DNA of 63,607 nt, filler included, from Olpidium bornovanus S191 (taxonomy: Eukaryota > Fungi > Olpidiomycota), in NCBI GenBank assembly GCA_017911155.1. It is 33 parts of 33 records of this genome, joined end to end, with 100 filler letters (N's around TTAATTAATTAA, not from the genome) between each part and the next. Parts side by side here need not be neighbours in the genome. Positions count along the whole stretch, not along the records: positions 51,471 to 55,159 come from JAEFCI010008505.1; 32 more parts are not named here. The stretch is one strand, 5' to 3'. Below the pieces are notes generated by a model that was not told the DNA's origin, did not search any database, and saw only the letters and a program-made list of their open reading frames with translations. Shown piece by piece: positions 51,471 through 55,159 of the stretch. Each line of letters begins with the position of its first letter. Position 1 is the stretch's first letter. The translations under genes were made by a program, and so were the position numbers.

Positions 51471-52082
51471 CATGTCAATGCTTCGGCGGAGAGTGTTTCA
51501 CGAACCTGGGCCCGTAAAAGAGGCTTACCCGGAAATCCTGACCACATCTTCTTCTATGAGAACAACGAGGCCGGTGTGTGTCTGGGCGACGTTTGTTAGT
51601 CACATTGCGCTGCTGTCCCGCAGGCCGCAGCGCGCTCGTACTCAGGCGCAGCCTTGACAAACGTACGTTTAAAGCGGAAGCCGCCAGATCTGCCACGGTG
51701 CTCAATTTTTGGCGAAGTTCTTGCGTCGGCTGGAAACCGGATCGGGGCGTCTCAGATTTCCGCCAGCAGTTAAAACGTTTTGAGAAGAAGCAGGCGAAAA
51801 CCGCGGACGTCTCTTTATGTTCGTTTCTTTTTGTTGTTGTCGCCGTACCTCCCACCTGGTCCGATAGCTCCACAGTTTCTTCAGCCGCTCGCTCTCGTCC
51901 GGCGGGGCCGGCGGCCGCAGGAAATCGATGTACTGGAAGAATCCCGGATACTTCCCGTCGGGGGGCGCGTCAAGGTTCTCGCCCTTGGCGTAGGACGCCA
52001 AGTAATTGCGTATCTCTTTCTCCACGTGAGGCGGCAGGCCTCTCGTTGGCAGGCCGTCCGGGCAGTCGTCGCGCTGCGGCAT
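51471..52082 (-). CDS. GAF-domain protein (N-terminal part)
   Basis: aaaATG at 52082. PPAPPDESERLKKLWSY...| ELRQKLSTVADLAASALN| THTGLVVLIEEDVVRISG follows the GAF entry pattern P.P..E..RL..L..Y......L..LA...F....ISLID. Confidence 0.6.
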
Positions 52083-52867
52083 TTTGAGCGGGAAGGGTCC
52101 GCGGCGGGGCCAGGGCGACGGAAGGGAGTGGAAGGGAAGGCGCCGGAAAGTTGTCGAAAGATCGATTACATCAGTTGGTATGCGACCCTCGCCCCCGCGG
52201 CAAATTTATTAGTAATTAGCGGCCTACTCCCGCCCTCATCCCCCGTCGCAACTTCCTTCCTGTCATTCTGCCGCAACGCCCTAGACGAAACCCGGTTGTC
52301 TCGCGCCCTTCGGGAGCCTTGAAAACAGCATCCGCCGCAGTGGAAAGGTTTGCAGCCCGACCCTACCGGTGCGCGGCCTGGCCGTCGCCTTCCAAGACCA
52401 AAAACCCGGCGAGCCTCAAGCCCCTCCGGATGATGCCCATCCCGCACGCAACGGCGGCACTTCCCGTGGTCAGACACCTTTCGCGGCCGCTTCGGCGGGC
52501 GCTTCCAACCGCGGCTCGGTGTGGATAACAAACCCCGCAGCTCGAGCTACGCCAAAATCACGGCACCCGATTCCAGAGTCACGGGTTGCCGTCGTTGTCG
52601 GACGAAAAATCCCCCGCCCCTCCCCCACGTTTTCTCCCTCCGCCCGGGCCGGCCGGCCTTTTCCCAAACCCATTTCCTGCACCCTCTGCAACGCAATTTT
52701 CAGTTCACAGCAGTTTCGTTTGGATGCTACAAAACGACCAAATAGACTTTGCTCGCGCTTCCTCGATCAAAAATGGAAATGGCCGGGCAAAAGAAATGCT
52801 ACTCTCCTAAAACTTCCCGCCGGAGAAATGAGATAGGCGGGGAGTTTATTTCCCGCTCAGCGACAGA

Positions 52868-53315
52868 CTAACGGCGCCCCCCACCTCCGCCGAGGGCGCC
52901 TCTGCACCCGCCGGCGGCGCGGAATCCGCGGCAGCAGGCGGTGCGGCGGAGCTTTTTTTGTGTGCGCGGCGGAATGATCGCAGGTTGGTCAGGATTATGC
53001 GGGACGCGCGAAATAATAATAATAATAATAAAAAAGGCCTCATAATATCAATAAAAAAGCCTCGGCCGGGAGTGGGCGGGAGGTGAGGTTCAGGCGGGCG
53101 GGAAGGGAAGCGGGCGTAGGGGGGCCGCAAAAAAAAAAATGCAAGTGACGTACGCGAGCGCAGCACGCGTTGAAGTCGCATCCGCGCCTGAAGAATCCTA
53201 GGCCGAACTGGGGTTCCGGGATCGGCTCGGGTTCGGGTTCGGCGTGGGCGACGGCCGCCCCGGCGAAGAACGACACAAGCGCGACGAAAACGGCGAGGAA
53301 GGCCTGCAGTCGCAT
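52868..53315 (-). CDS. Complete 81-aa secreted cysteine-rich cationic prepropeptide (two exons)
   Basis: Exon 1 is 53315-53154. The intron 53153-52952 is gtacgt...ctgac...aaaaaaag (first AG after the branch site, phase 0). Exon 2 is 52951-52868. Product: MRLQAFLAVFVALVSFFAGAAVA-HAEPEPEPIPEP-QFGLGFFRRGCDFNACCARLRRTACCRGFRAAGGCRGALGGGGGRR*. Confidence 0.8.
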
Positions 53316-54304
53316 GATTATGATGTTATGGGGGAGGGAGACGGGCCGCGGCGGGCGCGGGAAGGAGGGTTGAGCCGGTGCGGGCCGGGAAGGAGTGTGT
53401 GGGTTCTGGATCGGAAAATCCGCGGGGCCGGTGACCGGGACGAACGGAGCTTTGTTTTCCCGCAAATATTCCGCCGGCGTCCGGCGTTTTAATGCCAAGC
53501 AGAGGCGCGAGCGGCAACCCTTCTCCCGCCCTTTCCCCCCACGCTCGAGCTGCCCTACGGCGGCGGAGCGCGGAGCTCGTCGTCAGGCTTTGCGAGTTTT
53601 GCTCTGCAACGGAAGCGGCGTCCGTGACGCGCGTTTTGGCCGCGACGTTGGGCCCCGCTACGCGCGCGGGGCGGGCCGTCTCTCCTTCCCCCACGGAAAG
53701 CGAAAAAAAGAAATCGAGAAGATTCTTTCGCGCAGTTTGCGCTTTCTTTTTTTACTTTTGGAGAGCAACTTAAAGATAAAGTCGCGGTGGGGACGGTCCC
53801 AACCGGGAAGACCAGCGCAGAGCGCGAGCTTCCAATCGCGAGCTAAAAGAAAAAAAAACCTGCCTCGCCCCCCGCCCTCGCAAAACTCGGCTTCCCACGG
53901 CGGGTTCGACGGGGCGGTTGGCGTGTTAGCGGCGCTGAACGTCCGAGTTTTACATCAGCAAACTTCGTGTTATTGCGAGCCGACGAAGATTATGCTCGAA
54001 AGCCAAACGCAGGAGCTGATTTTGCGGCGGGCAGGATGTCGGCGGCCGAAAAGCCCGAAAAAATACTTCGCCGTCATAAAAAAAAATAACACAGCGGGTG
54101 CGCAGCGGATGGAAGGGGGAGCTGGGGCGCGGGCACGTTTGTTGATCACGGCGAGGGAAAGAATGATTACAAAAAAAAAATTATACCTCGACAGCCCGTC
54201 GCCAGCCTTGAAACCGGAAGGGGGCGACTTCTTTTGGAAAGAACTTTGGGAACCTCAGAAAAAAAAACAGGCGGAGACGCGGGTCGTTTGCTGCTCGCGC
54301 ACAA

Positions 54305-54603
54305 TGTTGGCCGTAGTTGACCCATGTCAAGTGACCACCATATTGTGAAACCCGGCTGTGCGCACCTAAACACCGTGAATGAATGGGAGCTCAACCGCCG
54401 ACACAAATGACAGGTTATCAGCCCAGCCGGACTCCTCTGGCCGCCACGCAGCAACAGCCCAAGGAGGTGAGGGACAACGGGAACAGCGGGTACACGACGC
54501 ACCTAAGAGGAGCCTGGACCTTGGAAGAAGCTTCTGCACTAGGGGGGGGGGGGGGGGGGGGGGGGGCGGGGACGGCGGGGGGCGGGGGGGGGGGGGGGGG
54601 GGT

Positions 54604-54641
<38 letters not shown>

Positions 54642-55159
54642 CGTGCCTTACGATTCCCCGCTGGCTGAGGGCAACTGGAGTGAAAAGTTAATATGCGGGC
54701 TGTTTTTATGCGAGGGAGGCTGTGGAATGTGGTATCTGGTGCGCGCCGATGTCCCCGGGGCGAGGCCGCGCAGGAATGGCTCATCTCGGTTAGGAAAGCC
54801 TTCGGCGAGATTTTCCCGCACGTCAGCGACCTCTACGAGCACCTCTTTGACGGGGTCGAGACATCCGAGAACGCCTGGAAAGCACTTTCCGCGCACTTTG
54901 AGAACGCAGGCTATTTGGCGCGCCCGGATCTCAAGAGAGCGCCCTACACCACGACCATGGTGGACACGGAGACCCTCGACAAATTTGAAATATACTAGTA
55001 TAATATATTCTGTTTACTATAATAGAATATATAGTAATATACGTTACAGAATATTATAGATTTATAAGATGTCAAATTCTAAAGTACAATCTATAAATCT
55101 ATAGGCACGCGCCTCAAGGACATTGTCCGTCGGCTCGGCGATCAGGGCGAAGAAACATG
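54305..55159 (+). mobile_element. Copia element 5' end: 108-bp LTR (54305-54412), PBS (54413-54426) and degenerate gag
   Basis: TGTTGG...ATGACA followed by GGTTATCAGCCCAG. Gag reads LAEGNWSE..NMRAVFMRGRLWNVVSG..CP...EW...TSENAWKALSAHFE...MVDTETLDKF|GTRLKDIVRRLGDQGE. Confidence 0.85.
54988..55104. other. 117-bp AT-rich (about 82% AT) insertion inside copia gag
   Basis: Removing it joins TTT G|GC ACG CGC CTC AAG in frame (F-G-T-R-L-K). It contains a 12-bp inverted repeat (55056-55067 / 55092-55103). Confidence 0.75.

Follow-up and report, generated by a model that had tools for sequence, protein, structure and literature searches.

A spliced and expressed orphan gene that probably encodes a small secreted cysteine-rich cationic prepropeptide in the Olpidium bornovanus S191 assembly

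Gene structure and transcript at the locus

The window, that is, the whole stretch of DNA that was analysed, comprises 63,607 nucleotides of the Olpidium bornovanus S191 genome assembly (GCA_017911155.1), in which 33 parts of 33 records are joined by filler. Positions 51471-55159, a piece of 3.7 kb, come from record JAEFCI010008505.1. The minus strand of this piece carries a gene with two coding exons, 53315..53154 (54 codons) and 52951..52871 (27 codons), whose translation gives a protein of 81 amino acids. The start codon at 53315..53313 has an A at position -3, and the frame is closed by a TAG stop codon at 52870..52868, so that the coding part of exon 2 (52868..52951) provides residues 55-81 and the stop. 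The two exons are separated by an intron of 202 nt with 50% GC (52952..53153), which lies in phase 0, begins with GTACGT and ends with AG. It contains a branch-like CTGAC site at 52992..52988, 37 nt ahead of the acceptor, and has no pyrimidine tract. The presence of the intron establishes a eukaryotic origin of the piece. The donor, the CTGAC site and the missing pyrimidine tract are compatible with a fungus, and a single intron proves nothing in this respect. At 53012-53063 the intron also carries a microsatellite, (AAT)6.7, together with a tandem duplication of 23 nt; positions 53006-53041 were masked as a repeat in read mapping.

A public run, X1, assembled in Logan, contains a contig of 835 nt with a k-mer depth of 168 that aligns to 53752..53154 and 52951..52718 on the minus strand and skips exactly the 202 nt of the intron. 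The skipped part ends in CT..AC on the plus strand, which reads GT..AG on the coding strand. Two differences separate the contig from the window, a T>C exchange at 53400 and an insertion of GA behind 52829, and both are non-coding. The preliminary description of this locus had proposed a two-exon gene of 81 amino acids, spliced in phase 0 at the junction 53153/52952 (the two terminal bases of the intron). The translation reproduces the quoted 54 and 27 residues followed by TAG, and the contig agrees with the junction to the base. The gene model is right.

Run X1 consists of 88 million letters, and its RNA type could only be guessed. For a DNA source, such a depth as that of the contig in so small a run would imply a genome smaller than about 0.5 Mb. 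Since the canonical intron is missing from the contig and both of its flanks are uncovered in X1, the possibility that the intron-less contig originates from DNA was dropped. Because of its depth in an 88-Mb run and the lack of cover on its flanks, the contig represents spliced mRNA. The stretch of the locus is also present in three sister runs from the same study. The expression that had been expected for the gene is thus documented by a spliced contig at depth 168, and the locus contains a real, spliced eukaryotic gene that was strongly expressed in at least one study. No read fell on positions 51471-54400 in three large RNA-seq runs with the species label of X1, each from a separate study and each sampled at about 10 million reads. 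The silence of these runs is no test of expression unless the presence of the organism in them is shown. The absence of reads means that either the expression is condition-specific, or the piece is foreign to the labelled organism and belongs to an associate or a contaminant.

The contig is colinear with the window up to position 53752 and ends at 52718, which gives a 5′ untranslated leader of at least 437 nt (53316..53752) and a 3′ untranslated region of at least 150 nt with 48% GC (52718..52867). The leader does not contain an ATG in any frame, compared with a mean of 4.0 in composition-matched shuffles (P(0) = 0.015), and the ATG at 53315 is the first one in the transcript. The sole other ATG frame of the transcript is 40 codons long and lies out of frame inside the coding part. 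The 81-residue frame is very probably translated. A search of Rfam with the leader gave nothing above sub-threshold noise. A leader of at least 437 nt is long for so small a gene, and it may have a regulatory role. A weak motif, TTTATCTTTAAG at 53780..53769, located 17-28 nt upstream of the contig end, may be a TATA-like element.

The remainder of the 3.7-kb piece is poor in genes. A run of about 100 G at 54542-54641 (88% match to a period-1 repeat) separates the upstream region of the gene from a fragment of a copia element. Runs of this kind can arise artificially from two-colour chemistry, so that the parts flanking it may not be truly adjacent; the run could also be a true G-rich tract. 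On the plus strand, an open reading frame of 101 amino acids at 54693-54998 matches the N-terminal 100 of the 172 positions of the copia-type gag profile PF14223 (E = 5e-10), and its look-alikes in the Atlas are copia gag clusters. The frame ends prematurely ahead of an AT-rich tail (55000-55110) and is a truncated remnant of a retrotransposon. An ATG-started open reading frame of 126 amino acids at 51702-52082 on the minus strand is absent from Pfam, the Atlas and exact-sequence records, is not covered by X1 contigs, and is probably not a gene. Atlas look-ups of these two frames gave no usable taxon, and the zoosporic fungus that the preliminary description had as the source stays a presumption.

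Protein layout, searches for relatives and predicted structure

The N-terminus of the encoded protein resembles a signal peptide (residues 1-23, 53247..53315, minus strand). It consists of M-R followed by about 20 hydrophobic residues, and its nine-residue hydropathy peaks at 3.27 over residues 3-22. Ala-x-Ala motifs end at residue 23 (AVA) and residue 25 (AHA) and provide two candidate cleavage sites, which were judged by eye according to the (-3,-1) rule. Among the ATG-started open reading frames of at least 40 amino acids in the piece, this N-terminus is unique, with a score of 2.85 compared with 0.89 for the next best. The signal-like part is followed by a spacer with the translated sequence HA-EP-EP-EP-IP-EP (residues 24-35, 53211..53246, minus strand). 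Its six X-Ala/X-Pro dipeptides keep the register set by either candidate cleavage site and end directly before Gln36. The DNA of the spacer is a hexanucleotide repeat (GGGTTC) of 5.3 copies at 53211-53242; therefore, slippage would add or remove whole dipeptides while the register is kept. The X-Pro stretch contains four Glu and is acidic, and the pro-piece of residues 26-44 has a pI of 4.5.

The core of 46 residues (36-81) opens at Gln36 with the hydrophobic segment QFGLGFF, which is followed by Arg43-Arg44, and contains ten Arg and one Asp. Residues 36-54 are encoded by the exon-1 part of the core (53154..53210, minus strand). The cysteines at positions 46, 51, 52, 60, 61 and 70 form the pattern C-x4-CC-x7-CC-x8-C, to which exon 1 contributes Cys46, Cys51 and Cys52, and exon 2 Cys60, Cys61 and Cys70. 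Pairs of arginines occur at residues 43-44 (53189..53184), 56-57 (52948..52943) and 80-81. A run of five Gly leads into the C-terminal Gly79-Arg80-Arg81. The pI values of the alternative cores range from 9.3 to 11.4, with 10.4 for residues 45-81. The signal-like start, the in-register X-Pro spacer, and the cationic core with its spacing of six cysteines, ten Arg, one Asp and G-R-R end were all found as the preliminary description had them.

The searches for relatives covered profiles, sequences and patterns. In Pfam, neither exon 1, nor the intron-retained frame, nor the 46-residue core had a match, the core not even at E up to 10. Weak Pfam rows for RXLR and DUF4516 were rejected, as their scores fall well short of the cut-offs and the alignments are confined to the hydrophobic N-terminus. 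A word-indexed search of 5.8 billion clusters with exon 1, with exon 1 extended upstream in frame so as to cover longer gene calls, and with a 50-residue core found nothing at E up to 10, and a phmmer search with exon 1 against 1.84 billion representatives gave no matches at E up to 0.001. Exon 2, with 27 amino acids, is too short to be searched alone, and the spliced core was searched through the word index, Pfam and the PDB. The best match among PDB sequences was a zinc-finger protein at the chance level of E = 0.62. The spacing C-x4-CC-x7-CC-x8-C matched none of the Pfam models or PDB sequences, none of 600 pattern matches in JGI metagenome contigs was confirmed, and a search of the ESM Atlas by features gave nothing usable. 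An exact look-up of the intron-retained reading frame returned no record, and the 3.7-kb piece does not contain a second copy or a paralogue.

The peptide had been described as belonging to no known family, and this holds across the Pfam, word-indexed, phmmer, JGI, PDB and fold searches. The gene is an orphan without detectable relatives. Short, fast-evolving peptides are hard to detect by homology. The failure to find a homologue or a paralogue counts against a functional prepropeptide, as it leaves conservation and selection without evidence. The designation of the locus as a new peptide system was overstated, since it comprises one orphan gene, next to which no paralogue or partner was seen.

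The structure of the 46-residue core was predicted by AlphaFold2 without an alignment, with a mean pLDDT of 69 and values of about 80 over residues 11-40. The model contains three short helices formed by residues 13-18, 24-32 and 34-40 (46-residue numbering), which carry both CC pairs and the last cysteine, whereas both ends are disordered. Arg56-Arg57 of the precursor is positioned in the loop between helices 13-18 and 24-32 and therefore would be exposed. Foldseek found no matches to the model in the PDB, and VIA-align found none with a Z of 2 or more among 48,161 chains. This result is weak evidence in either direction because the model is small and of middling confidence.

Proposed maturation and function of the peptide

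Based on the layout of the precursor and the transcript, we consider it probable that the gene encodes a small, secreted, Arg-rich, cationic prepropeptide with six cysteines and without relatives. Residues 1-23 or 1-25, which show the n/h/c arrangement of signal peptides, would constitute a cleaved signal peptide that directs the product into the secretory pathway, and the acidic X-Pro stretch would be a pro-piece that is subsequently removed. Anionic pro-pieces that mask a cationic core are common among host-defence peptides. Two routes of removal appear equally plausible from the motifs. A dipeptidyl aminopeptidase of the Ste13/DPP-IV type may trim the spacer stepwise and halt at Gln36; the unbroken, in-register run of X-Ala/X-Pro dipeptides up to the presumed mature start is the pattern of its substrates. 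Alternatively, a Kex2-type protease may cut after Arg43-Arg44, so that the spacer and QFGLGFF are lost together and the mature peptide starts with Gly45. The Gln36 N-terminus would then be removed altogether. The two routes give different N-termini, Gln36 or its pyroglutamyl form and Gly45, which are separable by mass. Without modification and with the cysteines reduced, the calculated average mass is 4843.6 for residues 36-81, 4531.2 for 36-79, 3734.3 for 45-81 and 3421.9 for 45-79. The six cysteines may form three disulfides and so stabilise a core that would be compact, mostly helical and 35-46 residues long, with a net charge of about +5 to +9. A Kex1-type carboxypeptidase may remove the terminal Arg-Arg, or the pair may stay in place as charge; either is more likely than its use in an amidation signal. 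Dipeptidyl-aminopeptidase trimming, pyroglutamate formation and amidation are all guesses at the level of motifs.

The peptide would act outside the cell. Its most likely role is that of a membrane-active antimicrobial or competition peptide, ahead of a host-directed effector in second place and a signalling peptide in third. The predicted size, disulfides and charge, together with a transcript that is abundant in one study and without reads in three other large runs, would best suit an inducible antimicrobial or competition peptide. We speculate further that it may be the founding member of a new family of tiny, Arg-rich, helical host-defence or toxin peptides with three disulfides and a new cysteine framework, produced by an early-diverging fungus and matured by stepwise X-Pro trimming, as insect venom peptides are, but we regard this extended reading as rather unlikely.

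The main alternative to a secreted prepropeptide is that the reading frame is young and arose de novo on an expressed transcript, in which case the mRNA is real, while the 81-residue product is neither selected nor functional. The frame has no relatives in any search, is preceded by an unusually long leader and lies in gene-poor surroundings with a fragment of a copia gag. Furthermore, its Gly/Ala/Arg-rich tail resembles random GC-rich sequence and its spacer is a simple DNA repeat, both of which are the expected yield of GC-rich DNA and count against the prepropeptide. The coding part, however, has a strong third-position bias, with a GC3 of 0.80 compared with 0.61-0.68 at any position of the leader, and uses TTC for all nine Phe and TGC for all six Cys. 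Relative to translated random sequence of equal base composition, the protein is enriched in Phe (9 versus 1.4 expected) and in Cys (6 versus 2.7), and the cysteines are paired; Ser (1 versus 7) and Pro (5 versus 12, all five of them in the spacer) are depleted. Together with the ATG-free leader (P about 0.015), the clean signal-like start with its Ala-x-Ala motifs and the phase-0 intron, these properties make a de novo frame improbable. Another possibility is that the precursor is cut by a Kex2-type protease at the three Arg-Arg sites, which would result in a disulfide-linked heterodimer or in the release of a short (pGlu)FGLGFF signal, the latter being the alternative offered in the preliminary description. 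Yeast killer toxins are disulfide-linked heterodimers produced from a cleaved precursor. Arg56-Arg57 is positioned in the modelled interhelix loop, and KR and RR are the usual Kex2 sites in fungi (PMC6339444). Nevertheless, the repeated cores typical of KEPs are absent, and dibasic pairs are expected by chance in a sequence with 22% Arg, so that such multiple cleavage is also improbable.

The hydrophobic run of residues 3 to 23 has a length sufficient to span a membrane, and its stretch of about 20 residues could be an uncleaved signal anchor instead of a signal peptide. The product would then be a small type II membrane protein, with its cysteine-rich part tethered at the cell surface or in the lumen of an organelle. 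We consider such an anchor very unlikely, as two good Ala-x-Ala motifs follow directly after the run, only one positive charge is N-terminal to it, and the next stretch is rich in Pro and Glu, as is typical of cleaved prepro-peptides. Least credible of all is an animal-style amidated pyroglutamyl hormone or toxin, matured by DPP-IV, glutaminyl cyclase, a carboxypeptidase and PAM acting on Gly79. Gln36 and the Gly-Arg-Arg-stop motif are present, and Gly79 would be exposed once Arg80 and Arg81 are removed, as is required of a PAM substrate. However, a review reports that all fungi lack PAM, even the chytrids with their flagellated zoospores (PMC6529398). Therefore, if the source is a fungus, G-R-R is unlikely to serve as the amidation signal that the preliminary description had put forward. 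In addition, Gly79 closes a run of five and need not be a signal. The secreted six-cysteine prepropeptide remains the preferred reading, against which also stand the three silent RNA-seq runs, the middling confidence of its structure model and the lack of a match to a solved fold.

The locus illustrates that a short two-exon peptide gene that is absent from lists of open reading frames is recoverable from raw sequence and can be confirmed with transcript data from a public run. Provided that it is secreted and active, the peptide would extend the known range of small cationic disulfide-rich peptides by a new cysteine framework, and it would be a case in which X-Pro trimming serves to mature a peptide instead of a pheromone or an enzyme. 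Should it be the founder of a family, it would represent an antimicrobial scaffold of a new kind and the first peptide of its type among early-diverging fungi. Small secreted cysteine-rich proteins without relatives abound in microbial eukaryotes. The significance of the gene is tempered by this commonness of its kind, by its being a single locus and by the motif-level nature of the proposed modifications.

Comparison with known systems

Hydrophobins are small secreted fungal proteins with CC doublets, which the peptide shares, but they have eight cysteines (C-CC-C-C-CC-C) and are not cationic. The earlier statement that the eight-cysteine pattern does not fit is upheld: the peptide has only six cysteines and no match to the hydrophobin profiles (PF01185/PF06766) or to any other Pfam profile even at E up to 10, and a hydrophobin was rejected. 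Sequence and fold comparisons (PDB, Foldseek and VIA-align) likewise gave no match to defensins, knottins or other solved disulfide-rich folds. [quoted passage not shown] The class further calls for a classical signal peptide that is cleaved and for the absence of a transmembrane domain; the N-terminus of the peptide, with its Ala-x-Ala motifs, is a candidate for such a signal, but its hydrophobic region is long (about 20 residues). The mature part of the peptide would comprise 35-58 amino acids with six cysteines (10-17%), and it shares with members of this class the signal-like N-terminus, the lack of a known domain and the restriction to a lineage. The class is operational and not a family, and the peptide differs from its other members by its very small size (35-46 residues) and strongly cationic character.

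The spacer resembles the pro-parts of promelittin and other precursors of hymenopteran venom and immune peptides, which are also composed of acidic X-Pro/X-Ala dipeptides. Dipeptidyl peptidase IV reportedly removes the promelittin pro-part in successive steps (Kreil et al. 1980). Promelittin is the product of an animal gene, melittin does not contain cysteines, and there is no homology to the peptide, so that the likeness is one of mechanism only. The precursor had been called a venom-style prepropeptide with an X-Pro spacer. The spacer is present, whereas the venom label is an analogy only, because such stretches are already known in fungal signals (PMC9252082, PMC6339444).

Fungal precursors provide further parallels. 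Alpha-factor and many KEPs contain KR/RR sites together with XA/XP dipeptides, which are the signature of STE13 and are removed by it (PMC6339444). In KEPs the dipeptides follow a Kex2 site and the cores are repeated, whereas in the present precursor they come directly after the signal-like N-terminus, and its core is single and non-repeated. A precursor of the KEP or alpha-factor type was considered and rejected: three RR sites are present, but the intervening segments are unrelated in sequence and length and do not form repeats. In LIP2 and XPR2 of Yarrowia lipolytica, the signal is followed by a run of X-Ala/X-Pro dipeptides that is processed by an aminopeptidase and by a pro segment that is cut in the Golgi (PMC9252082). 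These proteins are large enzymes without sequence homology to the peptide, whereas the cargo here is a cysteine-rich core of 35-46 residues, whose processing is proposed by motif. The order of the elements is nevertheless the same, with a signal-like N-terminus, six X-Ala/X-Pro dipeptides, QFGLGFF and Arg-Arg leading into the core.
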